In this document: in pieces, positions 1,205 to 23,102 of the stretch
Layout of the letters: every line of letters starts with the position of its first letter
Numbering within the stretch: the first letter of the stretch is position 1
Sequence record: NC_048048.2
DNA: 64,000 bases
Direction: 5' to 3' (one strand)
Notes under the pieces: model-generated
What the model was told of the DNA's origin: nothing
Databases searched by the model: none
The model's input: the letters and a program-made list of their open reading frames with translations, nothing else
Translations under genes and position numbers: made by a program

Positions 1205-1380
1205 TCCGCCCAAGACCACGATCGGCGACATCTTCAGACAGTCGCCGATCGTCGACTTTGCCCCCTGTGGGGCGCGTTAACCATGTTTGTTTACCCTCTT
1301 TGGCCCGTTAACCTTAATAAAATCCCTGGTAGTACCAAGTAGGACCGGCACTACCAGCGGTAATACCGGAGAAAACGCCC

Positions 1381-1944
1381 GTGTTTCGCTACATCGCTGC
1401 CCTTTTCGACCACATCGTCCACTACAAGCTCGCCCCCGCCCACCTGAAGGTGGAGAACCAGGGCGCCCTGGAGCGGCTCCAGGCGGCCGATCGCCAGATC
1501 GAGGCCGGCGTCTATGCCGGCAGCGACGTGCGCGGCACCCGCGCCTACGCCTTCCACCACATCCCGCCGCGCGAGCGCCTGATCGCCGCCAACAAGGGCC
1601 GCGACGTCACCAGCCTCACCCCGCGCCGCGAGCGTCGCCTGTCGGTGGCCGGCAAGAAGCCCTGGGAGCCGCTGCTGGTCACCGAGCCGCCGCGTGATCC
1701 CGAGGAACTGGCGCGCGAGCGCGAGGATGAGGCCCGTGCCCTGCGCGACAGCGCCGAGCATCTGGCCAAGCGCGCGGCCACGCGTCTGGCGCGCCAGCGG
1801 ATGCGCGAACGCTACGCGCCTTATCGCAGCGCGGGTCAGGAGGTGCTGAGCAACGTCGGCCTGGACGCCACCTGGGTGCGGGCTGGCTATCAGCAGGCCA
1901 TCGACGACGCCCATCCGATCGCCGAGACCCCGGACGAAGTCTAG
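1381..1944 (+). CDS. Hypothetical protein (187 aa)
   Basis: GGAGA RBS, GTG start, phage-like codon usage; GTTAACCAT (1276) and TTAACCTTAA (1308) upstream. Confidence 0.75.
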   Translation: MFRYIAALFDHIVHYKLAPAHLKVENQGALERLQAADRQIEAGVYAGSDVRGTRAYAFHHIPPRERLIAANKGRDVTSLTPRRERRLSVAGKKPWEPLLVTEPPRDPEELAREREDEARALRDSAEHLAKRAATRLARQRMRERYAPYRSAGQEVLSNVGLDATWVRAGYQQAIDDAHPIAETPDEV

Positions 1945-2043
1945 GGACCCTCGTCCCAACCGCTCGGGGACCCGGCCGGAAAAAGGCCAGGGACCCTGGC
2001 GGAAAAACCTCCAGGGACCCTGCGCCAGACGAGCCAGGGACCC
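1944..2043. repeat. Five GGGACCC repeats at 23-24 bp period
   Basis: GGGACCC at 1944, 1967, 1990, 2014, 2037; the last three lie in a CCAGGG-A-CCCTG(G) dyad. Confidence 0.85.
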
Positions 2044-2084
2044 TGGCCAAAATCGCTTCCAACCCAGACGGAAATTCGTAAGCC

Positions 2085-2231
2085 ATGCCCCACGACCTCC
2101 TCGCCCTCGTCTATTTCACCCTGGCCAGCCTCCTGGCGCTCGCCATCCTCTTTGGCGAACTCGACTGGGATATCGACGGCCGCCGGGGCAGCCTCAAAGG
2201 CCCGCTCGCCCCGCCCGGTCCTAGTTCATAG
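2085..2231 (+). CDS. Small membrane protein (48 aa)
   Basis: Manually translated MPHDLLALVYFTLASLLALAILFGELDW...; one hydrophobic helix; below the ORF-track cut-off. Confidence 0.5.
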   Translation: MPHDLLALVYFTLASLLALAILFGELDWDIDGRRGSLKGPLAPPGPSS

Positions 2232-2871
2232 TTTTCGTGACAACATTTGATTTCATTGGGCTTTTTGGCCTGCTGTCACGATTCAAAAGGTTTCACGCGT
2301 GCCCCGAGCCCTGCAAATCCACCCAAAATGGGCGATTTTGATCGATCTCGGGCTCTGGCTGATCGTCAGGATCATCGCATTGGTCCACAATGCGAGGCCG
2401 GAGGCCGGTGCGCCACCCACCAAAGCGTGAGACATGTCAAGCCCCCTGGCTTGGCGTGTCATAGTTTGTCCGAAAGGTGACAGGGCGGGCGCAAAAGAAA
2501 TCCGGTTGACTCCGCAAACCCAGGCCAGACTTGACGTTGCGCCATTCTCCGCAGGTCTTGCGGCGATTGCCCAGGCTATTCTCCGCACGTGTCCGCAAAA
2601 CCGCCTATGTGACGCCCTGCTTGACACGGCGGGGGCGCTGTGACACACAAAAGGCTCGGGCGTGCGCTCGGATGGAAAGCCCCGCTGTCGGCTTCACGCC
2701 AAGGCCTGGGTGGACCACCAGCGCTAGACCTGCCCGCCGGCGCCCTCGACCCCATGCGATCGCCGGCGGGACCCCACCGCCTTGGCCTGCCACACCCGGC
2801 GAGGACCCAGGGCGAGAAACGCCCACCAGAGCCCGCCGCCCTGGTGGGCGTTTTGGTGTCCGGGCCTGGAC

Positions 2872-3054
2872 TTGACGTCGGCCCATTTCGCCGCCGACTT
2901 GACGCCGGATCATTTGCCCGGCCGACTTGACGCCAGCGCATTTCCCCCAGACTTGACGCGAACGCATTTCGAATTTGACGCGAGCGCGTTTCCTTCCCAA
3001 ATTTGACGCGAGTCCATTTCAAACTTGACTTGACGTCATTTCATTTCCTTGACC
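2872..3054. repeat. Tandem TTGAC(G)..CATTTC array
   Basis: TTGAC at 2872, 2899, 2927, 2953, 2975, 3003, 3025, 3030, 3049, mostly followed by CATTT(C). Confidence 0.85.
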
Positions 3055-3079
3055 TGACGCCGTTCCGTTCCGCCGGGCC

Positions 3080-3305
3080 TTAAGGTTAACGGCGGATTAA
3101 CCATACGGCGAGTAAGGTTAATTTTCAAGGTTAACGGGTAGGATGAACGAACGTGGTTAACGGGCCTTAAGGTTAAATCTTAAGGTTAACAGGCGTTAAG
3201 GTTAACGCTTAGGGTGAAAAATTAAGGTTAACGCGCCCGGCCGGACCGCCCAGGCCCTACCGGCGCCGTTAAGGTTAACGCCAGGGGTCGAATCGTTAAG
3301 GTTAA
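3080..3305. repeat. Dense TTAAGGTTAA cluster
   Basis: Perfect 10-mers at 3080, 3167, 3180, 3196, 3222, 3269, 3296 plus partial copies, all in one orientation. Confidence 0.85.
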
Positions 3306-3310
3306 CACCC

Positions 3311-3427
3311 AAAAACAGCGAAAATCAGCAAAAATCGTCCAAAAACAGTGAAAATCAGCGAAAAATAGCGCTTTTCAGCCTGAAAATCGCAAAAAATCCG
3401 TGTTTTGGCCCATTTTTGGGTCATTTT
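3311..3427. repeat. Phased A/T tracts (intrinsically curved DNA)
   Basis: 12 A4-6/T4-5 tracts starting 3311, 3321, 3330, 3341, 3351, 3361, 3372, 3383, 3391, 3403, 3413, 3424 (about 10.3 bp period). Confidence 0.85.
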
Positions 3428-3496
3428 CGCGCTCTGACCCGCTTCTGGGCCAGCCCGAACGGGCGCCGGCCGGGTCGTGATCCCCCGGCCGGTGGG

Positions 3497-3607
3497 TCAG
3501 TGGAGAATCCAGAGCAACAGCGCCAGAGCCGCCAGTGACCAGCCGTTCAGCAATTTCAGGTGTGCGCCTCTCTCGTCTGCCGTGGCCGCTCGCCACGCTT
3601 CCTTCAT
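3497..3607 (-). CDS. Hydrophobic micropeptide, family copy 3 (36 aa from ATG or 20 aa from CTG at 3559)
   Basis: C-terminal LKLLNGWSLAALALLLWILH* aligns with the 20-aa peptides at 13822 and 17561. Confidence 0.55.
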   Translation of the reverse strand: MKEAWRAATADERGAHLKLLNGWSLAALALLLWILH

Positions 3608-3702
3608 CGCATACAAGAAAACTGTTGCCAAGCCCCAAAGATCGCTTGACAGCATAAAAGCCCAATGCGACAAGGGGACATCCAAACGGGAGACACCCCC
3701 CA

Positions 3703-4275
3703 ATGACCACCGAAACCCTCGACCTCCTCTATCCGGTCCTGATGCTGGAGCAGAAGATTCCCCACCGCGAAGGCATGTTGCGGCTGGCCATCGTCCTGCG
3801 CGACTTCGGCCCCAAGGCGCCCCATCGCTACGTCACCCACCTGCGGGCTGAAAACCCCGTGCCGGGCTCTGACCACGCCTTCACCTACAGCTATGAGCAT
3901 GGCACCTATTCGGCCGACCTGCGCCGCGCCCTGGCCGTCTATTTCGAGCGCGTCACCGAGCGGGTCATGACCGCCATGGTCGTGCTCCACGACCTGCCCG
4001 AGGTCGCGCCGCCGGCGCCGACCGTCACCGTGCCGCTCGAACTGGCCCAGACCGCCTATGGCCTGATCGATGACAACGAACTGGACCTCTCCAAGGCCTG
4101 CGGCAACGTCACCTTGGTCGAGGCCGCCATTACCGGTCTGGCCGCCGTCCTGGGACCGCGCCGCTACTTCCGCGATGTCGAGGAAGGCAACGCCAAGCTT
4201 CTGGAGGCCTTCGAAGCCCAGCAAGCCGCGCGTGACGCGGCCCTAGAAGCCGAATCCGAAGAGGAAGAGGCCTAA
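3703..4275 (+). CDS. Hypothetical protein (cassette gene)
   Basis: Follows promoter 3646 and GGGAGACACCCC leader/RBS. Confidence 0.85.
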   Translation: MTTETLDLLYPVLMLEQKIPHREGMLRLAIVLRDFGPKAPHRYVTHLRAENPVPGSDHAFTYSYEHGTYSADLRRALAVYFERVTERVMTAMVVLHDLPEVAPPAPTVTVPLELAQTAYGLIDDNELDLSKACGNVTLVEAAITGLAAVLGPRRYFRDVEEGNAKLLEAFEAQQAARDAALEAESEEEEA

Positions 4276-4445
4276 AAAGCCCGCCCAGGCCTCCCCGGCC
4301 TGGGCGTGAGCCCTCCAGGGGCCGTTAAGGTTAACGCCAGGGGCCGGGACGTTAAGGTTAAGGCCGAAAATAGTGCGAGAAACCTGTTGACACGCATTGC
4401 GGCCCTATGCGAGAACAAGGCTCCACTTCATGAGGAGCGCCAAGC

Positions 4446-5072
4446 ATGGCCCTGCCCGATCACTTCCTGGTTTCCGTCGACGGCTCGCTCTATGACACGC
4501 GGGTGCAAGGCTGGAACCAAGCCGCGCCGCTGCGGATCAATTACCGGATCGTCAATCGCGACATCCACGGCATGAGCGAGGTCAAGGCCGCCTTGCGCTG
4601 CGGCGCCTTTACCGACATCGGCGGCTATCCGCTGTATTTCGTCACGCAGGACGGCCGCGCCCTGTCCTTCGACAGCGCCCGCAAGATGCTCTATCAGATC
4701 GCCGACGATTTCCAGCATGGCGCCTCGACCGGCTGGCGGATCACCGGCGCCCTCATCAACTACGAGGATCACGACCTCGTCTGCGATCACAGCGGCGAGA
4801 AGATTCCGGCCGCCTATGATCCGGTGCAATGGGCCGCAGGCTGCAATGTCTCGGGCTTCATGCCCGACAGCGAGCCTTCCCACCATGCGACCTGGGAAGA
4901 GGCCAAGGAAGACTTGCGCGCCCAGGTCGAACTGGCGCGCGAGCCCTACGAGATCGGTTCGGACGAGGACGACGCCCTAGCCCGCGTCGCCCGCGCCCTG
5001 GAGGCCCTTAAGGAAGGCCAAGAGCTTAACATGGGCGCCATCGGCTATCGCTGGTGGGTCGAACGCCTGTAA
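4446..5072 (+). CDS. Hypothetical protein, conserved phage family (GGYPLYFVT..DG / INYED.DL.CDH)
   Basis: Follows promoter 4387; GAGGAG RBS. Confidence 0.85.
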   Translation: MALPDHFLVSVDGSLYDTRVQGWNQAAPLRINYRIVNRDIHGMSEVKAALRCGAFTDIGGYPLYFVTQDGRALSFDSARKMLYQIADDFQHGASTGWRITGALINYEDHDLVCDHSGEKIPAAYDPVQWAAGCNVSGFMPDSEPSHHATWEEAKEDLRAQVELAREPYEIGSDEDDALARVARALEALKEGQELNMGAIGYRWWVERL

Positions 5073-5093
5073 ACCAAGGAAAGGACCCCTTCC

Positions 5094-5240
5094 ATGTTCA
5101 TTCTCATCGTCGGCAATCCCAGCGACGGCTTCACTTATTACGGCCCCTTCGACGAGCATGACGACGCCGTCACCTATGCCGAGGCGACCGGCACCGAGGG
5201 CAACCCCTGGTGGGTCGCGCCCCTGGAAGCGGCGGACTAG
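5094..5240 (+). CDS. Small hypothetical protein (48 aa)
   Basis: AAGGA RBS; MFILIVGNPSDGFTYYGPFDEHDDAV...; manually translated. Confidence 0.7.
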   Translation: MFILIVGNPSDGFTYYGPFDEHDDAVTYAEATGTEGNPWWVAPLEAAD

Positions 5241-5246
5241 CCCGTC

Positions 5247-5381
5247 ATGACCGCTCTCGAAAAGCGCGGCTACAAGGCCGCCCAGGCGGGCGTCAAGTGG
5301 TGGAACAACCCCCACCCCAGCGGCTCCCCGGCCGCCTATCAGTGGGACAAGGGCCACACCCGCCACCGCCTCGGACGCTAG
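5247..5381 (+). CDS. Rmf/CrpP-fold-like small protein (44 aa)
   Basis: MTALEKRGYKAAQAGVKWWNNPHPSGSPAAYQWDKGH; the RGYxA..G....NP.......W..G pattern resembles Rmf RGYQAG...CPY...WLGGW. Confidence 0.5.
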   Translation: MTALEKRGYKAAQAGVKWWNNPHPSGSPAAYQWDKGHTRHRLGR

Positions 5382-5384
5382 CCG

Positions 5385-5410
5385 AGCCCAGGCCTTCGCG
5401 CCTGGGCTTT
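5385..5410 (+). terminator. Intrinsic terminator
   Basis: AGCCCAGGC/GCCTGGGCT stem followed by a short T run. Confidence 0.55.
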
Positions 5411-5560
5411 GCCCGCCCCCTGGGCGTTAAGGTTAAGGCCGAAAATAGTTCAAGAAACCTGTTGACACGCATCAGGCTCCCATGCGAGAACAGGATCAGA
5501 CGAAACGACAAGACCACAAAGGAGGCCGCCATGAAGTAGCGACAATCTGGAGCACAACTC

Positions 5561-5947
5561 ATGGAATTCTTCGTCCGCACCACGCTGGTCAGCATCGCCC
5601 GCCACTGGGAGGACGGCGCCGACGTGATCGCCACCTGCTATTGCGTCTGTGTCGAGTACCCGGACGGCGCCCGCTATGTCCACGACTATCAGCCGGTCGA
5701 CCGCTATGTCAGCGCCGACGACGAAGGCGAGCCCATCTATCCCTGGCGGGACGGCGAGGCCATCAAGGCCAAGCTGGACGCCTTGCGCGATGAGATCGCC
5801 GCCCACGTCGCCGCTGGCGGGAGCCTCGATCCTGGCCACTGGTTCGAGGTCGATCCGCGCTACGGCTCCCCGGCCTATATGGGCCTGGACGCCTTCGGGT
5901 TCTTCCGGGCGCGCGAAAAGCAAGAGGCCGCCGAGCGCGGCGACTGA
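5561..5947 (+). CDS. Hypothetical protein
   Basis: GGAG RBS, downstream of promoter 5462. Confidence 0.8.
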   Translation: MEFFVRTTLVSIARHWEDGADVIATCYCVCVEYPDGARYVHDYQPVDRYVSADDEGEPIYPWRDGEAIKAKLDALRDEIAAHVAAGGSLDPGHWFEVDPRYGSPAYMGLDAFGFFRAREKQEAAERGD

Positions 5948-5952
5948 CACCC

Positions 5953-5982
5953 AAAAGGCCCGCCCATCCGGCGGGCCTTTTT
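5953..5982 (+). terminator. Intrinsic terminator (possibly bidirectional)
   Basis: AAAAGGCCCGCC-CATCC-GGCGGGCCTTTTT. Confidence 0.85.
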
Positions 5983-6129
5983 CCTTGACCACCGCCTGGG
6001 GTTAACCTTAAGGCCGCGTTAAGGTTAAGCCCGCCCAGGCCCGTAAAAAGATGCAAGAAACCTGTTGACACGCATGGAAGGCCTATGCGAGAACAGGGCT
6101 CAACACCAACGCCAGCCGGGAGACACCCC

Positions 6130-6720
6130 ATGGCCCTCGTCACCGAATCCTTTGTCGTCGATCTGGCCTGCGGGCGCGCCCTGACCAACGGCGAGCGCCG
6201 CATGGTCGCCGCCGTGATCGACTCGCTTCTCGACCCGCATTTCAAGTCGACCGCCTGGGTCAAGGGCGGCGACCATCGCGAGGCCGTCCACTACTGCGAC
6301 CGCGTGACGCCCTACAGCCTGCACGGCGAGAACGCCAACGCCGCGCGCGTGCGCACCGAGGCCCTGACCACCCGCGACCATGACGCCCCCGTCCTGCTGT
6401 CGCTGTCGGTCGGCGACACCATCGGCGAAATCGCCCGCTTCTACACCATCGCCGCCGCTGTCGAATATCTCGACGGCAACCCCGATATCGATCCGACCTC
6501 GCTGCACATGGGCGCCTACACCATTGACGCCCCGTTCGGCGTGGCCAATGACATCGAGGCTGACAAGCTCCTCTATGACCTGGGCTATCGCCTGCACGCC
6601 ATGGCCGGCGGGTCCTGGACCTACAGCGATCCGCAGGGCCGCCTGTGGGACGGCGGCGGCAAGCGCGAAGCCGTGGTCATGATCGCTCTGAAGCAAGCCG
6701 CCGACGCTGAAGAGGCCTAA
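6130..6720 (+). CDS. Hypothetical protein
   Basis: Start reassigned to the ATG after GGGAGACACCCC; the ORF-track start at 6085 is the promoter ATG. Confidence 0.85.
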   Translation: MALVTESFVVDLACGRALTNGERRMVAAVIDSLLDPHFKSTAWVKGGDHREAVHYCDRVTPYSLHGENANAARVRTEALTTRDHDAPVLLSLSVGDTIGEIARFYTIAAAVEYLDGNPDIDPTSLHMGAYTIDAPFGVANDIEADKLLYDLGYRLHAMAGGSWTYSDPQGRLWDGGGKREAVVMIALKQAADAEEA

Positions 6721-6725
6721 GGCCC

Positions 6726-7049
6726 GTGAAGCGCCGTCACGCCCTCTTCCTGTCGGTGATCGCTTCGGCGCCCGACGTGGTGATCCTGCAAGCTCCGGCG
6801 CACTTCCTGCGCTGGAGCGACCACCGCAAGGCCATCCTGGCGTTCATGCGCCAGACCTACGGCGTCAAGGCCGCCGACGTTCACGCCGTCGAAGGCGTCG
6901 CCGGCTATGCCGAACCCGACCCGACCGACGACCCCGCCGTCCTGGCGCGCTTTCAAGCCGCCTTCGCCGGGTCTGACAACTTCCCCAAGGTCGCCCTGGC
7001 GGCCTGGGACGGGCAGGCCTATCGGCTGGTCCGCCGGCCTCTGGCGTGA
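6726..7049 (+). CDS. Hypothetical protein
   Basis: GTG start directly after the upstream gene. Confidence 0.7.
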   Translation: MKRRHALFLSVIASAPDVVILQAPAHFLRWSDHRKAILAFMRQTYGVKAADVHAVEGVAGYAEPDPTDDPAVLARFQAAFAGSDNFPKVALAAWDGQAYRLVRRPLA

Positions 7050-7173
7050 GGCCGCCACCGCCCAGGCTTAACCTTAACGTGGCGTTAAGGTTAAGGCCGA
7101 AAATAGTTCAAGAAAGCTGTTGACAGCATAGGAGGCTTATGCGAGAAAGGCTCATCGAAACGGGAGACACCCC

Positions 7174-7689
7174 ATGGACGACACCTATCCGCCCCTGACC
7201 CCCGGCCAGCAAGCCGCCCTGGTCGCCTTCGCCGACCAGCATGGCGGCCTGGGCGAGGCCTGGAAAGAGGCCCTGAGCGACGCCTGGAGGACGTGCAGCG
7301 AGCCCGATGCGCTCAAGGCCGACCTGCGGACCATCCGCAACACCTATGGCCCCTCCTGGCTCTATGACGAATACGCCTGGGGCTGGCGCCCGACCCTTCC
7401 CGACTGGGAGCGCGCCGGCCGCTGGACCGACACCCCGCCGCAGCCGACGCCGGGCAAGGCTCGCTGGAGCGCCGCCTTCGACCCGCCGGCCATCGGCGAC
7501 CGGGTGCGCGTGACCACCAACGGCCTGGGCTGGGCGCGGGTCACCGGCTACTTCGTCGAAGCCGACTGGCTGGGCGTGATTGTCAAGCTGGAGGCCCCGG
7601 CCGACTGGTATGTCAAACAGAACGGCGGCAACGTCCCCGGCCACAGCTTCGGGACCGAGATCGCCCTGACCGACCCCGCGACCGACTGA
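7174..7689 (+). CDS. Hypothetical protein
   Basis: Promoter 7120 plus GGGAGACACCCC leader. Confidence 0.85.
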   Translation: MDDTYPPLTPGQQAALVAFADQHGGLGEAWKEALSDAWRTCSEPDALKADLRTIRNTYGPSWLYDEYAWGWRPTLPDWERAGRWTDTPPQPTPGKARWSAAFDPPAIGDRVRVTTNGLGWARVTGYFVEADWLGVIVKLEAPADWYVKQNGGNVPGHSFGTEIALTDPATD

Positions 7690-7869
7690 CCTGGACGGCC
7701 CTGGCTGGGAGACCAGCCGGGGCGAGGCCTAACCCGGCGCGGTTAACCTTAACCGCCCATTAAGGTTAACCGCCGGCGCCCTGGGGCGGGCGAAAGAAAA
7801 TGCAAGAAAACTGTTGACACGCATCTGAGGGCTATGCGAGAAAGGGCCATCGAACAACGGAGGCCCCTC

Positions 7870-8712
7870 ATGGCCAAGCTATTCAGCGACCTTCAGGACC
7901 TTGCCAACTCGACCTATGTCGTGCGCATCGTCGACAATGGCGGCCAGAGCGCCGACCGCTACACGATCGTCACCGCCGATGGCGACTATTACGCCTACAG
8001 CGCCAATCCCGCCCATCCCCAAGGCGTGGGCCTGAGCGGCGAGGGCATCGACCCGCAAGTGCTGGTCGACTGGGTGGAGCGCGGCGAAGCCGTCGACCTG
8101 ACCATCGGCGAGCTACCCGAGGCCGCCGCCCGCTGTCTGCTGGCGTCGATCAACGCCAGCGTCGAGGACTTCCTGTCGGCTGTCGAGGACCCGACCAGCA
8201 ACGCCGTGGCCCCGACCCGCGAAAAGGCGGAGATCAATGACGGCGTGATGGATTGCTTCGGCAAGGGCATCTATCGCGTGGGCGAGGGTTTCGCCGTGCG
8301 CATGGATGGCCTGGACGCGGGCGATGATCGCGGCCCCTTCATGAGCGCTGTCGAGGCGGTCAAGGCCACCCTCCCCGATGAATACGCCTGGGCTGGCGAG
8401 GAATACCTGTCGCCGCGCGACATGACCAAGATCACGCCCGAAGCCAAGCCGCTCGTTCTGGTCCACGCCCTGGAGGCCATTCGCGACTATGAATATCAGC
8501 GCGACAACCCCGGCTCGTTCTTCGACGGGCTGAACGAGGACGACACTGACGCGGGCCTGGGCATCGTGCGCCGCACGCGCTACCTGTCCAAGGTCACCGA
8601 TGATGCGACCATCGTCGGGCTGATCGGCGAGGCGCCGGCCTTCGCCCTGGCCCATGAATGTCTCGACCAACTGTGGACCCTGGCGCAAGAGCGGTGGGAG
8701 GCGGGCCAGTGA
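7870..8712 (+). CDS. Hypothetical protein (acidic)
   Basis: Promoter 7814, GGAGG RBS; start reassigned to MAKLF. Confidence 0.85.
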   Translation: MAKLFSDLQDLANSTYVVRIVDNGGQSADRYTIVTADGDYYAYSANPAHPQGVGLSGEGIDPQVLVDWVERGEAVDLTIGELPEAAARCLLASINASVEDFLSAVEDPTSNAVAPTREKAEINDGVMDCFGKGIYRVGEGFAVRMDGLDAGDDRGPFMSAVEAVKATLPDEYAWAGEEYLSPRDMTKITPEAKPLVLVHALEAIRDYEYQRDNPGSFFDGLNEDDTDAGLGIVRRTRYLSKVTDDATIVGLIGEAPAFALAHECLDQLWTLAQERWEAGQ

Positions 8713-8912
8713 GCGCCCGCGAACGCCGCGCCCTCTCCGAACTGCTGGCCCTGTTCCACGCGGTCAACAGCGGCCACGTCAAGGGCCGCAACCCCTACGC
8801 CTTCCCGGCCGTCAAGCTCGCCAACGAGGTATTGACGGGCGACCCGCTGGACGGGGTTTCCACGTCGCCGAAGCCCTGGACCGGCATCGCGAGGCGGACG
8901 GCAAGGCCTTGA
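8709..8912 (+). CDS. Small hypothetical protein
   Basis: GTGA overlap with the upstream stop. Confidence 0.6.
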   Translation: MSARERRALSELLALFHAVNSGHVKGRNPYAFPAVKLANEVLTGDPLDGVSTSPKPWTGIARRTARP

Positions 8913-9067
8913 TTTTCGAGGTCGGCGGTTGCCCGGACGGCTGCTTGCTGTCCTACAGCGGCGCGGTTCCGCGCTGCGTCAACTGCGACACCGAATATCC
9001 CGAAGAAAACGGTTGACAGCATAAGGGAGCTATGCGAGAAAGGGTCATCAACGGAGACACCCCGCCC

Positions 9068-9208: not shown

Positions 9209-9218
9209 GAGACCTCGC

Positions 9219-15532: not shown

Positions 15533-15675
15533 GTCAAGGCCCGCCCATCCCCCTGGGCGGGCCTTGTCCTGGGCGATCGGCGTTAACCTTAACGCGCAAG
15601 AAAACTGTTGACACGCATTGCAGCCCTATGCGAGAAAGAGCGCCTAGGCCGCTTTGGCCCCTGGAGACTTGCGTC

Positions 15676-16257
15676 ATGGAACACCGCGACTTCGTTCCCC
15701 ACATCATCACCGCCCGCACCGTGGATGGAACCGTCTACTACGAGTCCAGCCACTGCACCGCCTTCCATCTGGGCTATGCCCGCGCCATGGACAAGGCCGA
15801 CGCCGAGCGCCGGGCCGCCGCCTGGAAGCGCGCGGAAAAGGACGGCGCCCCGCAAGCCACCATCGACGAGGGAACCTATGGGATCACCGTCGTGGCCACC
15901 ACCTGGGAGGCCCTGGACAAGGCCCGCGCCCATCGCGCCGAGCTTGAGCGCCTGGAGGCCAATTTCCTCGCCGAGGAGGCCCATGACGACCAGTTCGACG
16001 ACTATGAAGAACCGGTCATGAGCCCCGAGGATATCGCTGCCGAGGAAGAGGCCGCCCGCGACTATCTGGCCACCATCCAGCCCCATAAGGCCGGCGACGT
16101 GGTGCGGATCACCGACGAGGGCCATCCCCATTTCGGGGCGCTGGCCACCGTCGCCGAGGCCGAATGGAGCGGCTATCTCGTCCTTGACCTGGGCGCGGGC
16201 CTGACCTGGGGCTGGGCGACGGGCGTGCAATCGACGGCCGATTTCCCCCAGCCTTGA
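15676..16257 (+). CDS. Hypothetical protein
   Basis: Promoter 15608, GGAGA RBS; start reassigned to MEHRD. Confidence 0.8.
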   Translation: MEHRDFVPHIITARTVDGTVYYESSHCTAFHLGYARAMDKADAERRAAAWKRAEKDGAPQATIDEGTYGITVVATTWEALDKARAHRAELERLEANFLAEEAHDDQFDDYEEPVMSPEDIAAEEEAARDYLATIQPHKAGDVVRITDEGHPHFGALATVAEAEWSGYLVLDLGAGLTWGWATGVQSTADFPQP

Positions 16258-16365
16258 AAGCTGGCCTCGCGCCAGCAAAAAGGCCCGTCCCCTGGCGGGG
16301 CGGGCCTTGTCCGGTCCGATCGGGATTAACCTTAACGAGAGATTAAGGTTAACGCGCCCTTAAGG

Positions 16366-16611
16366 TTAACTGGTGGCGTTCTTGCGCGTCGTGGCCTGGG
16401 GATTGGCCTTGAGCCATGCGTCGGCTTCCGTGCGGGTCGAGAACGGCGCCCCGCCAATGCCCTGCGTGCCGTCATCCCATTGAATGGTCCAACCCACGTC
16501 CTTGATTTCCCAATCCTCCGCCACGCCATGGGGAATCGGCGTATGAAGCGCGATGCGGGTAAAGGGCGCGCGCTTGAGTTGACGGATGCGCGCCGGAATG
16601 ACTTGCGGCAT
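16366..16611 (-). CDS. Hypothetical protein; the only substantial minus-strand gene inside the cassette array
   Basis: Own promoter on the minus strand (TTGACA 16690-16685, then GCTACATT); protein-like composition. Confidence 0.6.
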   Translation of the reverse strand: MPQVIPARIRQLKRAPFTRIALHTPIPHGVAEDWEIKDVGWTIQWDDGTQGIGGAPFSTRTEADAWLKANPQATTRKNATS

Positions 16612-16659
16612 GTGTGGAATTTCCTTGACAAAGGCCTTGCCCCATGGGCGGCCCGAAAG

Positions 16660-16697
16660 GCGAATGTAGCAAGCGGCGCTTTCGTGTCAAGAAATGC
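16660..16697 (-). promoter_or_regulatory. RpoD-type promoter (CGCATTTC-TTGACA-N14-GCTACATT)
   Basis: 7/8 match to the Caulobacter -10 GCTANAWC; divergent from cassette promoter 16717. Confidence 0.6.
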
Positions 16698-16789
16698 GAC
16701 ATGGGCTAGAATCCTGTTGACACGCATTGCGGTCCTATGCGAGAAAGATCGGGCAAAGGCGCATCCCGCGCCGCTGGGAGACACCCCGC

Positions 16790-17560
16790 ATGGACCTGAC
16801 CACCTTTACGGCCAAGGCTGATTTCGTGCTCTGCAATGAGCCGGTGACCATCACCGTCAAGCCCGCCGGCCGCCCGCTCTACCTGTCGTTTTCCATCGAC
16901 CAGATCGGCATGATCGGCGGCGCCGAGGAGCTTTACGCCAAGGCCGAACAACACGGCGTCGAGGACCTGATAACGGTTCTCAACATTTCCAACGTCCTGT
17001 CGCTGAAGTCCATCGAGACCTATGACGACGAAGACCGCGAGGCCGTCGAAAGCCTGCGCTACGCCCTGCTCATGCTCGACGGCGAGCGCTACGCTTCGGA
17101 TGTCCAGTTCGAGGACGTGGACGAGGCCGAGTTTTCCAACCGCGACGACACCATTGACAGCCGGCAAATCGTCGAGCGGGTCGAGGTGCTTCGGAGCGCC
17201 CTGGAAACCGCCGGCTTCGACACCGCCGACCTGTCCGCCCTGGAAGACCTCGACGCCGACGAAGCCGTCAAGGACGCCGACCAGCGCGACGCCTTCAACG
17301 CCATCCGCGAGGAATTCCTGATCCTGGCGCGCATGGTCGAGGAGGGCGGCAACTACGGCGAGGATTGGCGGTTCGGCGCGACTCTGGTCCGCGAATCCTA
17401 CTTCACCGAGTTCGCGCAAGAAGAGTGCGAAAGCCTGGGCTTCATCTCCAAGGACTTCCCGTCCTGGATCGCCATCGACTGGGAAAAGACCGCCGAAACG
17501 ATGCTACACGACTACACCGAAATCGACTTCGACGGCGTGAGCTACTACGTCCGCGCCTAG
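16790..17560 (+). CDS. ArdA-like acidic anti-restriction (DNA mimic) protein
   Basis: Very D/E-rich; C-terminal FPSWIAIDWEKTAETMLHDYTEIDFDGVSYYVR resembles the ArdA C-terminus from memory. Confidence 0.6.
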   Translation: MDLTTFTAKADFVLCNEPVTITVKPAGRPLYLSFSIDQIGMIGGAEELYAKAEQHGVEDLITVLNISNVLSLKSIETYDDEDREAVESLRYALLMLDGERYASDVQFEDVDEAEFSNRDDTIDSRQIVERVEVLRSALETAGFDTADLSALEDLDADEAVKDADQRDAFNAIREEFLILARMVEEGGNYGEDWRFGATLVRESYFTEFAQEECESLGFISKDFPSWIAIDWEKTAETMLHDYTEIDFDGVSYYVRA

Positions 17561-17623
17561 GTGAAGCTCCTCGAAGGCGGCGGCCTGCTCGCGCTCTGCT
17601 TCCTCCTCTGGTTGCTTCACTAA
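17561..17623 (+). CDS. 20-aa hydrophobic micropeptide, copy 2 (MKLLEGGGLLALCFLLWLLH)
   Basis: GTG immediately after the ArdA-like TAG; synonymous divergence from 13822. Confidence 0.75.
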   Translation: MKLLEGGGLLALCFLLWLLH

Positions 17624-17626
17624 ACC

Positions 17627-17662
17627 CGGCCGGCGTCCATGACCTGGGCGCCGGCCTTTTCT
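17627..17662 (+). terminator. Intrinsic terminator
   Basis: GGCCGGCG../..CGCCGGCC stem followed by TTTTCTT. Confidence 0.65.
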
Positions 17663-17720
17663 TACCGCGCCGATCGGGGTTAACCTTAACGCCGTCTTAA
17701 GGTTAACGGCGGGCCTGGAG

Positions 17721-17849
17721 GCGAGGGCGTCAAGGCCGCGAGCTAGGATTACACGCGATGGCTTAGCCGGCGTCCAGCCGGCGGCGCCTTCGACCACCGC
17801 GAGGCGGCCTTGACCCTCGCAATCTCGCCGATCCGCGACCAAGTGTCAA
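17721..17849 (-). ncRNA. Candidate antisense small RNA with its own promoter
   Basis: Minus-strand TTGACA (17849-17844)-N15-GCGAGATT (17828-17821); 11+6 bp closing stem 17721-17739/17804-17820; no credible ORF. Confidence 0.45.
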
Positions 17850-17934
17850 CCGTTTTCTTTTTCCAAGAAACCTGTTGACACGCATCGAACGCCTATGCGA
17901 GAAAGACTCAACGTCAACGCCTGGAACCCTATCC

Positions 17935-18591
17935 ATGCCCCGCACCGTCACCAAACAGGTCTACACCTTCAAGGAACTGAATCCCAAGGCCAAGCAAAAG
18001 GCCATCGAGTGGTATCGTGGCCTGAACGATCAAGACTCCGGTTGGTGGGATTTCGTCTATGACGAAGCCGACCGCATCGCCGAAGCCTTCGGGATCACCC
18101 TGCGCCGCAAGGAAGCCGGCAAGCCCAATAGCGGCCCGGACATCATGTTCACCGGCTTCTGGAGTCAAGGCGACGGCGCCTGTTTCCAAGGCCGCTACGA
18201 GTCGCCCCAAACCCCGGCCGTCGAAGCCTTCGCCGCCCTGGGGATCGAAGACGCCACGCTCAAGGCTCTGGCCGCCCGCCTCGACGCCCTGAGCGCCAAG
18301 GTGCGCTTGATCAGCACGGTCAAGCACTCCGGTCACTACTATCACGAGTATTGCACCGACTTCGAAACCGAGCGCATGGTTCCCGACGACGCCGGCGACG
18401 ACTTCGATATCTACGATTTCGACCACGAGGACGAAAAGGAACTGATCGACATTCTTCGCAGCTTCATGAAGTGGATTTATCGCCAGCTTGAGGCCGTGGA
18501 CGAAGATCGCAATTCCGATGAGACGATCAGCGAAACCCTGACCGACTCCGATTACGAATTCGAGGCGGACGGCTCGCCGACCAACGACTAG
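17935..18591 (+). CDS. Conserved MGE protein (family often auto-annotated 'antitoxin of toxin-antitoxin stability system')
   Basis: Motifs VYTFKELNPKAKQKAIEWYR and FTGFWSQGDGACF recalled from alphaproteobacterial ICE/plasmid proteins; function unproven. Confidence 0.6.
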   Translation: MPRTVTKQVYTFKELNPKAKQKAIEWYRGLNDQDSGWWDFVYDEADRIAEAFGITLRRKEAGKPNSGPDIMFTGFWSQGDGACFQGRYESPQTPAVEAFAALGIEDATLKALAARLDALSAKVRLISTVKHSGHYYHEYCTDFETERMVPDDAGDDFDIYDFDHEDEKELIDILRSFMKWIYRQLEAVDEDRNSDETISETLTDSDYEFEADGSPTND

Positions 18592-18765
18592 GCCAAGCCC
18601 GCCGCGCCCGGCCTCAACGCCGGGCGCGTGTCGGGTTTTGGTTTTTCAAGGTCCTGTTAAGGTTAACGAAAAAAGCCCTCGGACGGCCTGAGAAAAACGC
18701 AAGAAAACTGTTGACACGCATCCAAGCCCTATGCGAGAAAGGCTCATCGCAACGGGAGACACCCC

Positions 18766-19053
18766 ATGACGACCCAAGCCAAGAAGCGCCGCAAGCGCTA
18801 CCCGCCCAAGAGCGACGCGGCCAAGGCCCGCGCCGCCGCCAAGAGCAAGGCGTTCTTCGCCCGTCACGCGCTCAAGGCCACCGAGGCCACGATTGCCGCC
18901 ATGAAGGCCGGCGATCAAAAGGCCGTCCAACGCCACGCCAAGGACGCCCGGCGCCTGACCCGCTGGATGAACCACAAGCGCGACATCGCCGCCGCCTTCG
19001 CGGCCGTCTTCAACATTCGGGCCGCCGCCCAAGCCCTGAGAGCCGCCGCATGA
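18766..19053 (+). CDS. Basic Lys/Arg/Ala-rich small protein
   Basis: Promoter 18711 plus GGGAGACACCCC leader. Confidence 0.8.
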   Translation: MTTQAKKRRKRYPPKSDAAKARAAAKSKAFFARHALKATEATIAAMKAGDQKAVQRHAKDARRLTRWMNHKRDIAAAFAAVFNIRAAAQALRAAA

Positions 19054-19265
19054 CCCGTCGCCCTGCCTTTCTGACCGTCCTGGGCGGGATTGGCCTCATC
19101 CTGGCCAGCTTCGTCCTTTCGGCCGCCAGCGCCCCGGAAAAGCGGGTTCTCGTGGGTCAATACTGCGACGGCGACCCCGTGCGCCTCTACGGCCTGGAAG
19201 ACGGCGAGGAAGCCGCGCAAGCGTGCGCCATCGTCGAAGTCCACGCCCTGCCCAAGGGCTTCTGA
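19050..19265 (+). CDS. Small secreted/membrane protein
   Basis: ATGA overlap; N-terminal hydrophobic segment. Confidence 0.65.
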   Translation: MTRRPAFLTVLGGIGLILASFVLSAASAPEKRVLVGQYCDGDPVRLYGLEDGEEAAQACAIVEVHALPKGF

Positions 19266-19267
19266 CC

Positions 19268-19525
19268 ATGGCCGCCCCGAACGACAGCCGCGAGGAGCCG
19301 GTCAAGGTCGAAGACCTCAAGGGCGGCATGATGTGCGATCTTGAGGGCGACATGTACGCCGACAACGCCGGGCGCTTCCCGGAATTCGAGTTCGCCTATG
19401 CCGTCGTCGTCGAAGTCGACACGGCCCCGCGCTACGAGGCGCCGGGGACGGTCCTGGTCGAGTTCGACAAGATCACCGTGGCCTTTCCCAAGGGCCACAC
19501 CCTGCCGACCATCAAGGAACCCTAG
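19268..19525 (+). CDS. Hypothetical protein
   Basis: TGACCATG junction. Confidence 0.7.
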   Translation: MAAPNDSREEPVKVEDLKGGMMCDLEGDMYADNAGRFPEFEFAYAVVVEVDTAPRYEAPGTVLVEFDKITVAFPKGHTLPTIKEP

Positions 19526-19527
19526 AC

Positions 19528-20061
19528 ATGGAACGCCTCAACGTCCACGTGCTGACCGTCACCTATGACAGCGGCAACCCCGTCCCGCCGTTCGTCGCCC
19601 TGGGCATGTCCAAGGAGGAACTTGACGACACCCTGGAGGCCCTGGCGCGCGAGGAAGTCGATAACCGCTATTTCGAGGAAGAAGACCTCTTAGACGACCT
19701 CGCCAAGTTCCTGACCGCCGAACGCGTCGCCGAGCTTGAGCCCCTGGGCCTGGACGCCATCGGCCTACTGACTCCGGTCGAAATCGTCGACATGGCCAAG
19801 CGCTTCGCCTCGATCACGCCAAGCTTTGACGTGCTCCCGCTCTACCGCGACCCGCCGCCCGTCCGCGCCTTCGATCTCGACGACCGCGAAGCCGCCGCCG
19901 TCCTGACCGGCCTGCGCATGATCCAAGCCCAAGGCGTCCCGGACGATCTCGACGACCTCGCCACCAATGGCGGCGCCTTCGAGCCCCTGGACGGCGACGC
20001 CATCGACGGGCTCTGTGTGCGGATCAATTTCGACGTGACCGGCGAGGCGCCGGCCTCCTGA
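19528..20061 (+). CDS. Hypothetical acidic protein
   Basis: Operon-packed. Confidence 0.8.
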   Translation: MERLNVHVLTVTYDSGNPVPPFVALGMSKEELDDTLEALAREEVDNRYFEEEDLLDDLAKFLTAERVAELEPLGLDAIGLLTPVEIVDMAKRFASITPSFDVLPLYRDPPPVRAFDLDDREAAAVLTGLRMIQAQGVPDDLDDLATNGGAFEPLDGDAIDGLCVRINFDVTGEAPAS

Positions 20062-20141
20062 CGCAAGAAAGCTGTTGACAGCATAATCCGCCTATGCGAG
20101 AAAAGGCTGTCAACGGCGATCCCCGCCGCATGGAGACACCC

Positions 20142-20486
20142 ATGAAGTTCATCAAGACCGACATCCTCGACCACGGCCGCGCCTCGACCCTGCGCAACGC
20201 CCTGGGCACGGCCCTGGAGCGCTACACCGAAATCGGCAAGGAATTCGAGGGCTACCTGAACGACTATCAGGCCCTGGACGAGGCGGGCAAGGAAGCCTGG
20301 AAGGCCCGCAACCACTGGATCAACCCGCGCGCCCTGCCCGACCTCAAGACCCAGTTCGAGCGCCAAGCCGCCGACGTGCAAGACCTCATCAACTGGCTTG
20401 ACGGCGACAAGTTCATGAACGAAGACGGCGATTTCCCCAAAGGGACCGAGTTCACCATTGTCGCCGGCCTGATCCGCGACTTCTAA
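20142..20486 (+). CDS. Hypothetical protein
   Basis: Promoter 20075, GGAGACACCC leader; start reassigned. Confidence 0.8.
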   Translation: MKFIKTDILDHGRASTLRNALGTALERYTEIGKEFEGYLNDYQALDEAGKEAWKARNHWINPRALPDLKTQFERQAADVQDLINWLDGDKFMNEDGDFPKGTEFTIVAGLIRDF

Positions 20487-20497
20487 ACGCCCTGGTC

Positions 20498-20524
20498 AAG
20501 GCCCGCCCTCACGGCGGGCCTTTT
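20498..20524 (+). terminator. Intrinsic terminator
   Basis: AAGGCCCGCC-CTCAC-GGCGGGCCTT plus T run. Confidence 0.85.
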
Positions 20525-20680
20525 CCTTGACCTCGCGCCGTTGTTAACCTTAACGTGCAATCGTTCGCCTGTTAACCTTAACGGGACATGCCTGATCCGT
20601 TAACCATAGCCTGCAAAAAAGCTGTTGACTCGCATCCAAGCCCTATGCGAGAAAGGGTCATCAGCAACGGGAACGATCCC

Positions 20681-21079
20681 ATGACCCAAGAATACACCGC
20701 CGAAGAACGCCAAGCCAAGTTGACCGAAATGGCCGATCACTGGCGCGAGCAACTGAAGGACGCCCAAGCCCGCCTGGACATGACCGTCCTCGTCGGTCAA
20801 GGATTCGTCTGCGCTCTGGAGCGCGATCTTTCCATGGCTATCCGCGCTGACGGTCCCGACCGCTATCGCCTGTGGCCAGTATCGGCGCGCATGGTTCCCA
20901 TCCTCCACTTCACCAAACTTGACGCCATGCGGGTCGCCGCGCACTGGAATGGCAACCTCCCCGACGATAAGCAGGACCTGCGAGTCGTCGCCACCCATTA
21001 CCGCGACGTGCTTCAAGCCTATGTCGAGACCGCAACGGCGCAAATCGCCTGGATCGAAGGCGGCTGCAAGGCCGCCTGA
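20681..21079 (+). CDS. Hypothetical protein
   Basis: Promoter 20625; start reassigned to MTQEY. Confidence 0.75.
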   Translation: MTQEYTAEERQAKLTEMADHWREQLKDAQARLDMTVLVGQGFVCALERDLSMAIRADGPDRYRLWPVSARMVPILHFTKLDAMRVAAHWNGNLPDDKQDLRVVATHYRDVLQAYVETATAQIAWIEGGCKAA

Positions 21080-21269
21080 CCTTGACGCCCTCCGGCTCCG
21101 GCCGGAGGGTTAATTTCTGCCCAGCCCGCGTTAAGGTTAACCCGCCGCCGGCCTGGGATTAACCTTAACCCGCAACCGTTTGCGGGTTAACCATTCGATG
21201 CAAGAAAGGTGTTGACACGCATTTAGGCCCTATGCGAGAAACGCCTATCAGCAACCGGGAAACACCCCC

Positions 21270-21833
21270 ATGCCGCAATTCGTTCTCGACACTTCGGGCA
21301 AGGCCCGTGTTGGCGCCACCAAGAATTTTCCGAACGGCGTCACCATCAACTGGAATGATCTCGACGCCTTCACCCAAGGCTATATCGAGGCGCTGTTTTT
21401 CACCGAAAATTCCCCGGCCTTCACGTCGGACGAATGGCACGGCGAGGAATGTCAAGCCGCGCTTGAGGCCGGCACGTCTGACGGCTCGCTCCCCGGTGAC
21501 GCCGGTTTCGCCGACCTTCATGAAACCGCCCTGGCCACCATCGTCGAGGAGTGCGCCGCCTTCCAACGCGAAAACGCCGACCTGTTGGCGCAAGCCTATG
21601 GCCACAACTTCCCGGCGCGGGTGATCGGCGACGGCACCTTGCCCGATTCCCACCGCCCGGCGTGGGACTATGACGAGGCGGCGGCGGGGCGGGATTTCTG
21701 GTACACTCGCAACGGCCATGGCGTCGGCTTTTGGGATCGCGGCCTAGGCGAGGTCGGCGACAAGCTTTCCGACGCCTGCCGTTACTCTGAGGTTTACGTG
21801 TCGTTCGAGGCTGACGGCAAGGTTCATCTCTAA
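21270..21833 (+). CDS. Conserved phage hypothetical (AGRDFWYTRNGHGVGFWDRG motif)
   Basis: Promoter 21212 plus GGGAAACACCCC leader. Confidence 0.85.
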   Translation: MPQFVLDTSGKARVGATKNFPNGVTINWNDLDAFTQGYIEALFFTENSPAFTSDEWHGEECQAALEAGTSDGSLPGDAGFADLHETALATIVEECAAFQRENADLLAQAYGHNFPARVIGDGTLPDSHRPAWDYDEAAAGRDFWYTRNGHGVGFWDRGLGEVGDKLSDACRYSEVYVSFEADGKVHL

Positions 21834-21839
21834 CCCGGC

Positions 21840-21867
21840 AAAGGCCCGCTTGACAGCGGGCCTTTTT
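21840..21867 (+). terminator. Intrinsic terminator
   Basis: AAAGGCCCGCT-TGAC-AGCGGGCCTTT plus TT. Confidence 0.85.
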
Positions 21868-21995
21868 CGTGCCTGCCCCACCTGGGTTAACCTTAACGCC
21901 AGCCCGCTTCGCCTTAACGCTCTTTTTGCAAGAAAACAGTTGACTCGCATCCAAGCCCCATGCGAGAAAAGGTCATCAACCACGGAGCGCCGCAC

Positions 21996-22370
21996 ATGGC
22001 CAAAACCGAAACCGTCGACCTCGCCCTGGTCATGCTCGATGAGCAAAAGGCCGCCCTGGGCGCCTCCCGGACCTTCACCTTTCACGAAGTCCGCGCGGCG
22101 TTCATCGACGCCAAGGCCCTGACCACGCTTGAGGCCACCTTGCACAAGATCGCTGAACACGAGTGCAACGGCTATCGCAGCGACATCACCGAACGTTTCG
22201 ACATCCGCCGCCGCGACAAGGCGCAAGCCGCCGCCACGGCCATTGCCGAGCGCTACGGCCTGACGCTCGATTTCAACGGCGACCCGCGCGGTTCGGCCCT
22301 GAAGATCAAGACCCCGCACACCGGCCGTTACAACGGCTTTGGCGGGCGTGAGGATGGATGGTGCGTCTAG
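21996..22370 (+). CDS. Conserved phage hypothetical (FNGDPRG..LKI motif)
   Basis: Promoter 21940, GGAG RBS; start reassigned. Confidence 0.8.
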   Translation: MAKTETVDLALVMLDEQKAALGASRTFTFHEVRAAFIDAKALTTLEATLHKIAEHECNGYRSDITERFDIRRRDKAQAAATAIAERYGLTLDFNGDPRGSALKIKTPHTGRYNGFGGREDGWCV

Positions 22371-22439
22371 CGCCATCCTGACCCCCTTCCACCCCCTGTA
22401 GCGCGTCCCTCTCAAACCCCTGGCCCTAGGAGACACCCC

Positions 22440-22610
22440 ATGGCCCGCACCACCACCCACACCCGCACCGACAAGGCCAAGCGCGAGACGCTGGCGCCGT
22501 GGGAATATGACCGCCAGCACAAGGCGGACAAGAAAGCCGCCAAGGCGTGGCGCACCGATCGCCAAGGCCGCCGCGCCCTGGCCTCTTCGGACGCCTTCAA
22601 GGCCCACTAG
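22440..22610 (+). CDS. Small basic protein (56 aa)
   Basis: AGGAGACACCCC leader; manually translated MARTTTHTRTDKAKRE... Confidence 0.75.
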   Translation: MARTTTHTRTDKAKRETLAPWEYDRQHKADKKAAKAWRTDRQGRRALASSDAFKAH

Positions 22611-22703
22611 GCGGGCTCGAAAAAAGTTCGGCTCGATGCGAGAAAGCTGTTGACTCGCATCGAGCCCCTATGCGATAAAGGGTCATCAAACGGAGACACC
22701 GAC

Positions 22704-22868
22704 ATGACCCACCTGCAACGCGCCACCACCGACCAAGTCACCGTCGAGCACTACGCCGTTTCGGGCGGTCAACTGACCGTCACCCGCGCCCCCGCCCGCG
22801 CCCCGATCTATCGCCTGAACGGCTTCAAGATCACCTACTTCGAGGCCAAGCGTAAGCTCGCCGCCTAA
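22704..22868 (+). CDS. Small hypothetical protein (54 aa)
   Basis: Promoter 22650, GGAGACACC leader. Confidence 0.75.
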   Translation: MTHLQRATTDQVTVEHYAVSGGQLTVTRAPARAPIYRLNGFKITYFEAKRKLAA

Positions 22869-22882
22869 GACCCCTCCCCGAT

Positions 22883-22912
22883 AAGGCCCCCTCCCTGGAG
22901 CGGGGCCTTTTT
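22883..22912 (+). terminator. Intrinsic terminator
   Basis: AAGGCCCC..GGGGCCTT stem plus TTT. Confidence 0.75.
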
Positions 22913-23102
22913 CGTGGCCGTTAGCCAAGCGTTAAGGTTAACCCGTAGGGTTGATTTCGTTAACCTTAATGGGGCGTTAAGGTTAACGGGCCGGCCCAGG
23001 CTGTTAACCCTGCGGGCGAAGAAAGTGCGATCCTGTGCAAGAAAGCTGTTGACTGCATAAGCGTCCTATGCGACAAAGGGTCATCAACAACGGAGCTACC
23101 CG

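Follow-up and report, generated by a model that had tools for sequence, protein, structure and literature searches.

A TTAA-based 10-mer in the terminal repeat of Caulobacter phage CcrSC, a candidate site for CtrA-containing host complexes

Published CtrA sites and the CcrSC terminal repeat

PhiCbK-like phages, and others that depend on pili or flagella, concentrate their predicted sites for the cell-cycle regulator CtrA in direct terminal repeats (DTRs) or gap regions (Mascolo et al. 2022, Front Microbiol 13:918015; PMC9437464). For phiCbK, Delta and Cp1R7A-A1 the paper reports both that CtrA binds and that expression depends on it, and it proposes a 'lytic deferment'. Here we describe the site that populates one such repeat, at the start of a 64,000-nucleotide stretch of record NC_048048.2 (the window): an exact 10-mer, TTAACCTTAA, of which the window holds 39 matches over both strands, against 0.00 expected from 100 dinucleotide-preserving shuffles. 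The window is the left end of the 317,489-bp genome of Caulobacter phage CcrSC (MH588547.2, also NC_048048; Bertelyvirus, Dolichocephalovirinae), and over its first 24 kb it matches positions 1-24000 of that record with 100% identity. CtrA is present in Caulobacter, and an earlier sequence-only reading of the window, which presupposed a host with CtrA, is supported on this point by the recorded host, Caulobacter vibrioides CB15.

In phiCbK, the early DTR promoters of gp005 and gp018 are described as bound and activated by CtrA, their expression falling 29-fold and 5-fold in a temperature-sensitive ctrA strain (PMC9437464); this published binding and CtrA-dependent transcription supports the earlier statement that phiCbK-like phages carry CtrA sites. 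The full CtrA site of Caulobacter is TTAA-N7-TTAAC, with the half-site TTAACCAT (PMC3692519), and the motif recovered for SciP by chromatin immunoprecipitation (ChIP), (G/A)TTAACCAT(A/G), has been described as belonging to an extended CtrA box (Fumeaux et al. 2014, PMC4083442). CcrSC itself appears in the survey of Mascolo et al., where Tables S6/S7 give its DTR coordinates, 38 sites in the unit genome, a skewed distribution and assignment to the class LPEG, with boxes at 3084, 6006, 7072, 7747, 9487, 9504, 11604, 14275, 16330, 16347 and 17684 (PMC9437464). Because those tables list both the boxes and the class, the clustering of TTAA-N7-TTAA (the N7 box) in the CcrSC DTR is already known, having been published in 2022. 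The 17-bp matrix used there captures only N7 boxes, so that 10-mers outside such boxes are missed; no description of the 10-mer unit was found in the searched text of that paper, nor in the literature searched on Caulobacter, CtrA or phage.

The CcrSC DTR is 23,946 bp long; its left copy is annotated as a repeat_region (1-23946) and was checked to be identical to 293544-317489, so that the region had rightly been suspected of being a DTR. The conserved unit within it is a 10-12-mer, G-TTAACCTTAA-C, and not the N7 box, and from comparison of the sequences we put at roughly 0.7 the probability that CtrA-containing host complexes bind the CcrSC 10-mers.

The 10-mer, its arrangement and its conservation

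Exactly 38 of the matches lie between 1308 and 22986 and one lies at 60983, in agreement with the earlier count of about 38 plus one. The whole genome contains 79 copies (2 x 38 in the DTRs and 3 elsewhere; 76/79 in the DTRs), or, for the unit genome, 41 copies with 38 inside the 23.9-kb repeat; the suggestion that CtrA-type sites are doubled per genome through a terminal repeat is thereby supported, with 12 N7 boxes and 38 10-mers in each DTR copy. All but one of the 38 (37/38) are fully non-coding. TTAA tetramers occur at 3.84 per kb inside the DTR versus 0.29 per kb outside it, and since 76 of the 92 DTR tetramers fall inside 10-mers, this enrichment is the 10-mer itself. The copy at 60983 is probably unrelated to the DTR array.

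With its flanks the site reads G-TTAACCTTAA-(C/G)-G, that is, two tandem (G/C)TTAAC hexamers, and the DTR holds only 3 one-off copies against its 38 exact ones. Across sister phages and distant relatives the sole common variant is a T to C change at position 7 (TTAACCCTAA; 19 copies in the sister phage RB23), TTAACC being near-invariant; because this change breaks the inner TTAA while TTAACC stays, the N7 box is one frequent arrangement of the unit rather than the unit. The sequence-only reading had attached significance to the outer TTAA, and this was borne out, the outer TTAACC being the most conserved part of the site. The 10-mer is retained across phages of 48% to 66% guanine-plus-cytosine (GC) content.

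Alignment with two sister phages points to purifying selection on the 10-mers. Against RB23 (~80% identical), identity was 91.9% in 10-mer columns and 74.1% in other non-coding columns; 20 of 37 10-mers were fully conserved in RB23, as compared to 15.6% of control 10-nt windows, and 28 of 38 were fully conserved in CcrBL9, as compared to 47.9% of control windows. Position by position, changed orthologues numbered 12-18 of 36-38 in the flanks and 0-8 in the core, and most of the non-identical RB23 orthologues were either the position-7 variant or a flipped copy.

Twelve exact N7 boxes occur in the window, all of them at 3086-22980 inside the DTR, against 0.04 expected; ten are made of two exact 10-mers, one of a 10-mer and TTAACCAT (3086), and one of a 10-mer and a one-off copy (11606). 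The earlier claim of 11 CtrA-consensus boxes confined to this region was correct as to their confinement and one short as to their number. Eight convergent 27-bp palindromes, with a start-to-start spacing of 17 bp, and two triplets were found, as had been described for palindromes with a TTAA-N7-TTAA core and for the chained cases at 9483-9526 and 16326-16369. Palindromes of this kind raise the possibility of a structural or recombination element, in which the repeats would form hairpins or cruciforms or serve as junctions for cassette shuffling; they do fold as 10-14-bp stems (z-scores -2.2 to -6.4), and cassette order differs between CcrSC and RB23, with some homology blocks beginning at a 10-mer. 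We regard this as the least probable of the explanations weighed here, given that only 16 of the 38 copies are inside 27-bp palindromes and 22 are outside, that Rfam has zero matches in 1-24500, and that helical phasing and bacterial promoter sites (below) fit protein binding. Homology-block ends were no nearer to 10-mers than were random positions (P = 0.78 and 0.19), and the 10-mers were rejected as recombination junctions.

When independent lineages were pooled, distances between TTAA tetramers peaked at 6, 11, 17, 21, 23, 27-28, 33-34, 38, 44, 49 and 55 bp. The base spacings are 11, 21-22, 32-33 and 43-44 bp, each of which also appears with 6 or 12 bp added, and the series therefore places the cores on one helix face. 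An in-phase partner exists for 30 of the 38 CcrSC 10-mers. Exact copies of TTAACCAT number four in the DTR (1277, 3097, 20600 and 21187), all of them beside 10-mers. The sites are arranged as follows (strand in brackets; a dot where none applies).

1..23946 (+): left DTR copy, from the record annotation and identity with 293544-317489
1308..1317 (+): single 10-mer, exact match, upstream of gp003; TTAACCAT half-site at 1277-1284
3080..3305 (-): dense array of eight exact 10-mers plus degenerate copies in a large non-coding region
3086-3104: canonical GTTAAC-N6-TTAACCAT box in the dense array; top-scoring published site, 17.2 on the position-specific scoring matrix (PSSM)
4325..4361 (-): direct pair of 10-mers (27 bp apart), 25 nt before the -35 TTGACA at 4387
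5427..5436 (-): single 10-mer, 25 nt before the -35 at 5462
6002..6028 (.): 27-bp palindrome (10-mer, N7, inverted 10-mer) with a terminator on one side and the promoter at 6065 on the other
7068..7094 (.): 27-bp palindrome upstream of the promoter at 7120
7743..7769 (.): 27-bp palindrome with arms reaching 14 bp, upstream of the promoter at 7814
9483..9526 (.): chained 10-mer triplet of 17-bp period with two N7 boxes, upstream of the promoter at 9564
11600..11626 (.): N7 box made of the one-off copy ATAACCTTAA and an exact 10-mer, with the promoter at 11672 downstream
14271..14297 (.): 27-bp palindrome straight after a terminator and 72 nt before the promoter at 14370
15583..15592 (+): single 10-mer, 15 nt before the -35 at 15608
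16326..16369 (.): chained 10-mer triplet, the last copy overlapping the 3' end of gp031c by 4 nt
17680..17706 (.): 27-bp palindrome, 23 nt after the terminator at 17628-17656
18657..18666 (-): single 10-mer, 44 nt before the -35 at 18711
20544..20630 (+): two direct 10-mers (20544, 20572), TTAACCAT at 20600-20607 and the -35 at 20625; TTAA cores 22 and 25 bp apart
21131..21217 (.): divergent 10-mers (21131, minus; 21159, plus), TTAACCAT at 21187-21194 and the -35 at 21212; spacing 22 and 25 bp
21887..21896 (+): single 10-mer after a terminator, with an extra TTAAC at 21914 just upstream of the next promoter
22932..22986 (.): three 10-mers (minus, plus, minus), the last two palindromic, upstream of the promoter at 23049
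60983..60992 (+): singleton outside the repeat, exact match, 22 nt past the end of a 624-aa reading frame

The left DTR carries ~46 small genes, 45 of them on the plus strand, in ~21 promoter-gene-terminator cassettes, and 25.3% of it is non-coding. In 16 of the 19 10-mer clusters a strong hairpin (free energy, dG, of -22 kcal/mol or lower) ends 0-32 nt upstream, and in 14 of the 19 a TTGAC -35 element follows at a distance of 15-72 nt, which bears out the earlier remark that the repeats usually stand between a terminator and the next promoter. A common pattern, 'gcaagaaaNctg TTGACA cgcat N9-10 atgcg agaaag', is found in some 20 DTR promoters, and every CcrSC DTR promoter has a TTGAC(A/T) -35 element of its own, with the 10-mers upstream of it. 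A fixed order of 10-mer, 21-22 bp, TTAACCAT, 25 bp and -35 element is present at 20572/20600/20625 and at 21159/21187/21212; all promoters of the uncultivated contig L019 (56% GC) repeat this order at matching spacing, and the large terminases of L019 and CcrSC are only 37% identical.

A protein seated on the 10-mers could act at the upstream end of these gaps, halting read-through polymerase and insulating one cassette from the next, a roadblock role compatible with CtrA binding. Such a role would suit the 16 clusters that begin just after a strong hairpin, the gap of ~19 nt from T-run to 10-mer in many cassettes, where the next promoter may be anything from 15 to 72 nt or more away, and the weak T-runs of several terminators. 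The gap differs by lineage, though (~12 nt after the T-run in uncultivated contig L028), its constancy in CcrSC may reflect duplicated intergenic modules, and neither the array at 3080-3305 nor the bacterial sites are beside terminators; we consider the roadblock very improbable as the explanation of the array.

Several further features of the cassettes were observed. The first 10-mer starts ~19 nt after the terminator T-run at 6002, 9483, 17680, 20544, 21887 and 22932, and the interval between them is partly conserved ('cttgNcc...cgcctgggg'); the near-constant gap suggests that whole intergenic modules were duplicated. In low-GC uncultivated relatives (L028:2190-2290 and 3130-3230; L016:240-300 and 1215-1275) the terminator hairpins are themselves built of TTAACC(AT)...(AT)GGTTAA arms followed by a T-run, so that each terminator contains two CtrA-type half-sites. 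The spacer between TTGACA and the -10 element is filled in every DTR promoter by the inverted repeat CGCAT-N9/10-ATGCG (4387-4420, 5462-5495, 7120-7152 and ~17 more), and promoters at 202-275 kb, which share the upstream part 'aagaaaNctgTTGACA', are without it; the dyad looks like an operator specific to the early class.

The dense array belongs to a 1.47-kb non-coding stretch (2231-3703) with the lowest GC content of the region (38-52%), in which ~7-9 tandem ~25-bp units (ACTTGACGC...CATTTC, 2869-3050) are followed by the eight-copy array at 3080-3305 and by six phased 10-bp A-tracts (3309-3370). The stretch resembles a replication origin by its layout. DnaA boxes were not enriched (56 matches versus 63 expected), and the idea of an origin is therefore one of layout resemblance only. 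In uncultivated relatives (L028), comparable arrays adjoin direct repeats and AT-rich tracts.

None of the DTR genes has a known function except gp001 (75-764), which matches the RNaseH-like nuclease that makes up the C-terminal domain of the large terminase (Terminase_6C, E = 3e-18); the left DTR boundary thus lies inside the terminase gene, and a like position is reported for phiCbK (PMC3556154).

Occurrence elsewhere and candidate binding proteins

In IMG/VR, at least 19 uncultivated viral loci (GC 49-64%; L103, L105, L109, L120 and L122 among them) carry 5-26 exact 10-mers each, where the reversed control gave 0, and the 10-mer is more widespread in uncultivated phages than these loci. Among the matches listed, loci with at least five 10-mers contained TTAACCAT at 0.54 per kb versus 0.018 per kb for its reversed control, and the remaining loci at 0.084 per kb versus 0.057 per kb.

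In the Brevundimonas phage Delta (87 kb), all 6 exact 10-mers, along with several one-off copies, fall in the gap region that holds its CtrA sites, and the published gel-shift probe for CtrA contains one exact 10-mer and a one-off copy 17 bp away. Phosphorylated CtrA (CtrA~P) specifically shifts this probe, CtrA represses the adjacent Delta gene, and Delta is placed by its authors far from the phiCbK group (PMC9437464). Convergence of these unrelated phages on one word indicates a host factor.

Among ~185,000 species genomes, the exact 27-bp palindrome was found in 12, of which 8 are Methylopila or Hansschlegelia; the same scan returned no match in Caulobacter. In those eight genomes the palindrome, conserved in its arms and variable in its N7 spacer, is followed ~55 nt downstream by a flagellin-family gene that has flbT and flagellin genes beside it (L034:156-182, L032:2414-2440, L033:7561-7587 and five more loci); the palindrome probably serves the flagellar cluster as a strong CtrA operator. 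Further intergenic 10-mers in these genomes precede a MotA gene and, in the form TTAA-N7-TTAACCTTAAC, an Omp25-like gene. At least 21 of 30 12-mers sampled from Hyphomicrobiales were intergenic, with neighbours that include flagellin, MotA, an outer membrane protein (OMP), a single-domain response regulator and two PAS_5 genes. The ancestral core of the CtrA regulon consists of motility genes. Counts over Alphaproteobacteria and Hyphomicrobiales gave neither the 10-mer nor the 12-mer an overall excess over the reversed control, so that only the location of the copies is informative.

We favour a reading in which the 10-mers would be sites at which protein binds double-stranded DNA, composed of TTAA half-sites for the host response regulator CtrA. 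The near-invariant TTAACC half would correspond to a half-site known both for CtrA and as the SciP-associated motif, and the second half (YTAA) would supply a TTAA able to pair with another TTAA 11, 21-22 or 32-33 bp away on the same helix face. Filling the cassette gaps in the order terminator hairpin, 10-mer(s), complete promoter of the host sigma-70 type, the sites would bring CtrA~P, possibly with its swarmer-cell partner SciP, upstream of most early DTR promoters, and early phage transcription would thereby be tied to the cell-cycle state of the host. By analogy with the two phages studied, the effect of CtrA in CcrSC may be activation, as in phiCbK, or repression, as in Delta.

Several observations sit uneasily with binding by CtrA. 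The sites leave the -35 element intact, 15-72 nt upstream of a complete TTGACA promoter, unlike those of phiCbK, and the palindrome cores score 9.6-13.6 on the published CtrA matrix versus 17.2 for the canonical box at 3084, the second TTAA being followed by G (TTAAGG) where the canonical TTAA-N7-TTAAC has C. In RB23, where the TTAACCYTAA family numbers 45 and the 27-bp palindromes ten, there are only 4 exact N7 boxes and 12 one-off boxes, the tolerated position-7 change striking the inner TTAA that forms the N7 box, and several uncultivated viral loci combine 5-12 10-mers with zero N7 boxes. Ten invariant positions hold far more information than the known TTAA(C) preference of CtrA accounts for; the invariant CC between the two TTAA falls outside its consensus, and across Hyphomicrobiales genomes the 12-mer is not over-represented (81 copies versus ~79 for the reversed control).

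Much of this would suit a different sequence-specific protein that reads the full 10-12-mer, the N7 spacing being secondary: an unrecognised phage protein, host SciP alone or another host factor. The excess of exact over one-off copies, the CC outside the CtrA consensus, the scarcity of N7 boxes in RB23 and their absence from some uncultivated loci, the moderate matrix scores, and a word that is one position off the SciP ChIP motif all lean this way. Set against them, CtrA~P shifts a probe that contains the 10-mer, and the sequence-only reading's suggestion of a different phage protein found no support: a six-frame search of the whole of CcrSC returned no homologue of Trans_reg_C (CtrA-type/OmpR-type), DUF1153 (SciP) or GcrA, Pfam scans of all 46 DTR proteins gave no DNA-binding domain (only the gp001 terminase nuclease and sub-threshold noise), and the presence of the exact 10-mer in the unrelated phage Delta and in bacterial flagellin, MotA and OMP promoters makes a lineage-specific phage protein unlikely. 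Overall we judge a protein other than CtrA to be an unlikely reader of the sites. For GcrA the six-frame search (E <= 0.01) detected nothing in CcrSC; phiCbK-type phages are reported to encode a GcrA homologue (PMC3556154).

The sequence-only reading had further proposed that the array could titrate CtrA~P and push the swarmer cell toward a replication-permissive state. Sites are indeed dense and doubled by the DTR, and phage replication multiplies them further, but an incoming genome offers at most 184 TTAA half-sites to ~10^4 CtrA molecules per cell (peak 20-30 uM; PMC8640480) and would bind <2% of them; numbers would become comparable only after ~50-100 genome copies, too late to drive a swarmer cell into S phase. 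A published analysis found, moreover, that CtrA binding at the chromosomal origin is hardly affected by DNA sites elsewhere (PMC8640480). A sponge has no need of precise placement in promoter-terminator gaps, of helical phase or of fixed spacing to TTAACCAT and the -35 element, and this jumbo phage presumably need not depend on firing of the host origin. Titration at infection is therefore a most improbable role for the array.

Within the CtrA reading, a more specific and distinctly tentative proposal is that G-TTAACCTTAA-C represents a separate, undescribed class of composite CtrA operator, occupied by CtrA plus SciP or by CtrA in two overlapping registers, on which phages of the phiCbK group, Delta and dozens of uncultivated contigs may have converged and which bacteria may use at flagellin, MotA and OMP promoters. 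Were this true, the early cassettes of CcrSC would be silent in swarmer cells, in which CtrA and SciP are both present, and active later, and the sites might gate the origin-like region (2860-3420) as CtrA gates the chromosomal origin. As an exact word of 20 bits, the 10-mer is far more specific than the known CtrA consensus, and it could define how CtrA, perhaps with SciP, tells promoter classes apart.

Comparison with known systems

Long direct terminal repeats (~7.5-8% of the genome) that carry small early genes with functions not known are common to CcrSC and coliphage T5; T5 is not known to use a host cell-cycle regulator. To call the CcrSC DTR 'first-injected', from its likeness to the T5 pre-early region, is only an analogy, and a comparison with T5 is also made in the phiCbK genome paper (PMC3556154).

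With the host motif of CtrA and SciP the phage unit G-TTAACC-T-T agrees at 9/10 positions. It lacks the exact TTAACCAT core, reading TTAACCTT in its place (7/8 positions), and its resemblance to the SciP motif is a lead and not membership. Where the host motif has A at position 7 the phage unit has T, followed by a second TTAA 6 bp from the first, and no description of this tandem arrangement was found among host sites.

The LPEG phages of Mascolo et al. are phages of Alphaproteobacteria that depend on pili or flagella and have clustered CtrA sites. CcrSC shares with their clusters the TTAA-N7-TTAA core, present as multiple boxes, an intergenic, promoter-proximal location and a skew toward the DTR. 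With phiCbK, a related phage, it shares early DTR promoters with CtrA-type sites. The validated phiCbK box, TTAAC-N6-TTAAC, overlaps the -35 position and is accompanied by no separate TTGACA, whereas CcrSC has a complete TTGACA and sites in both orientations; none of its DTR promoters is a class II CtrA promoter, in which a CtrA box replaces the -35 hexamer. Delta differs in its circularly permuted genome, its single 1.3-kb cluster and the action of CtrA as a repressor, in contrast to the cassette array of CcrSC. That phages entering only swarmer cells wire their first genes to the host cell-cycle regulator is a general point already published; CcrSC is no new kind of system, and what may deserve attention in it is the grammar of the sites.

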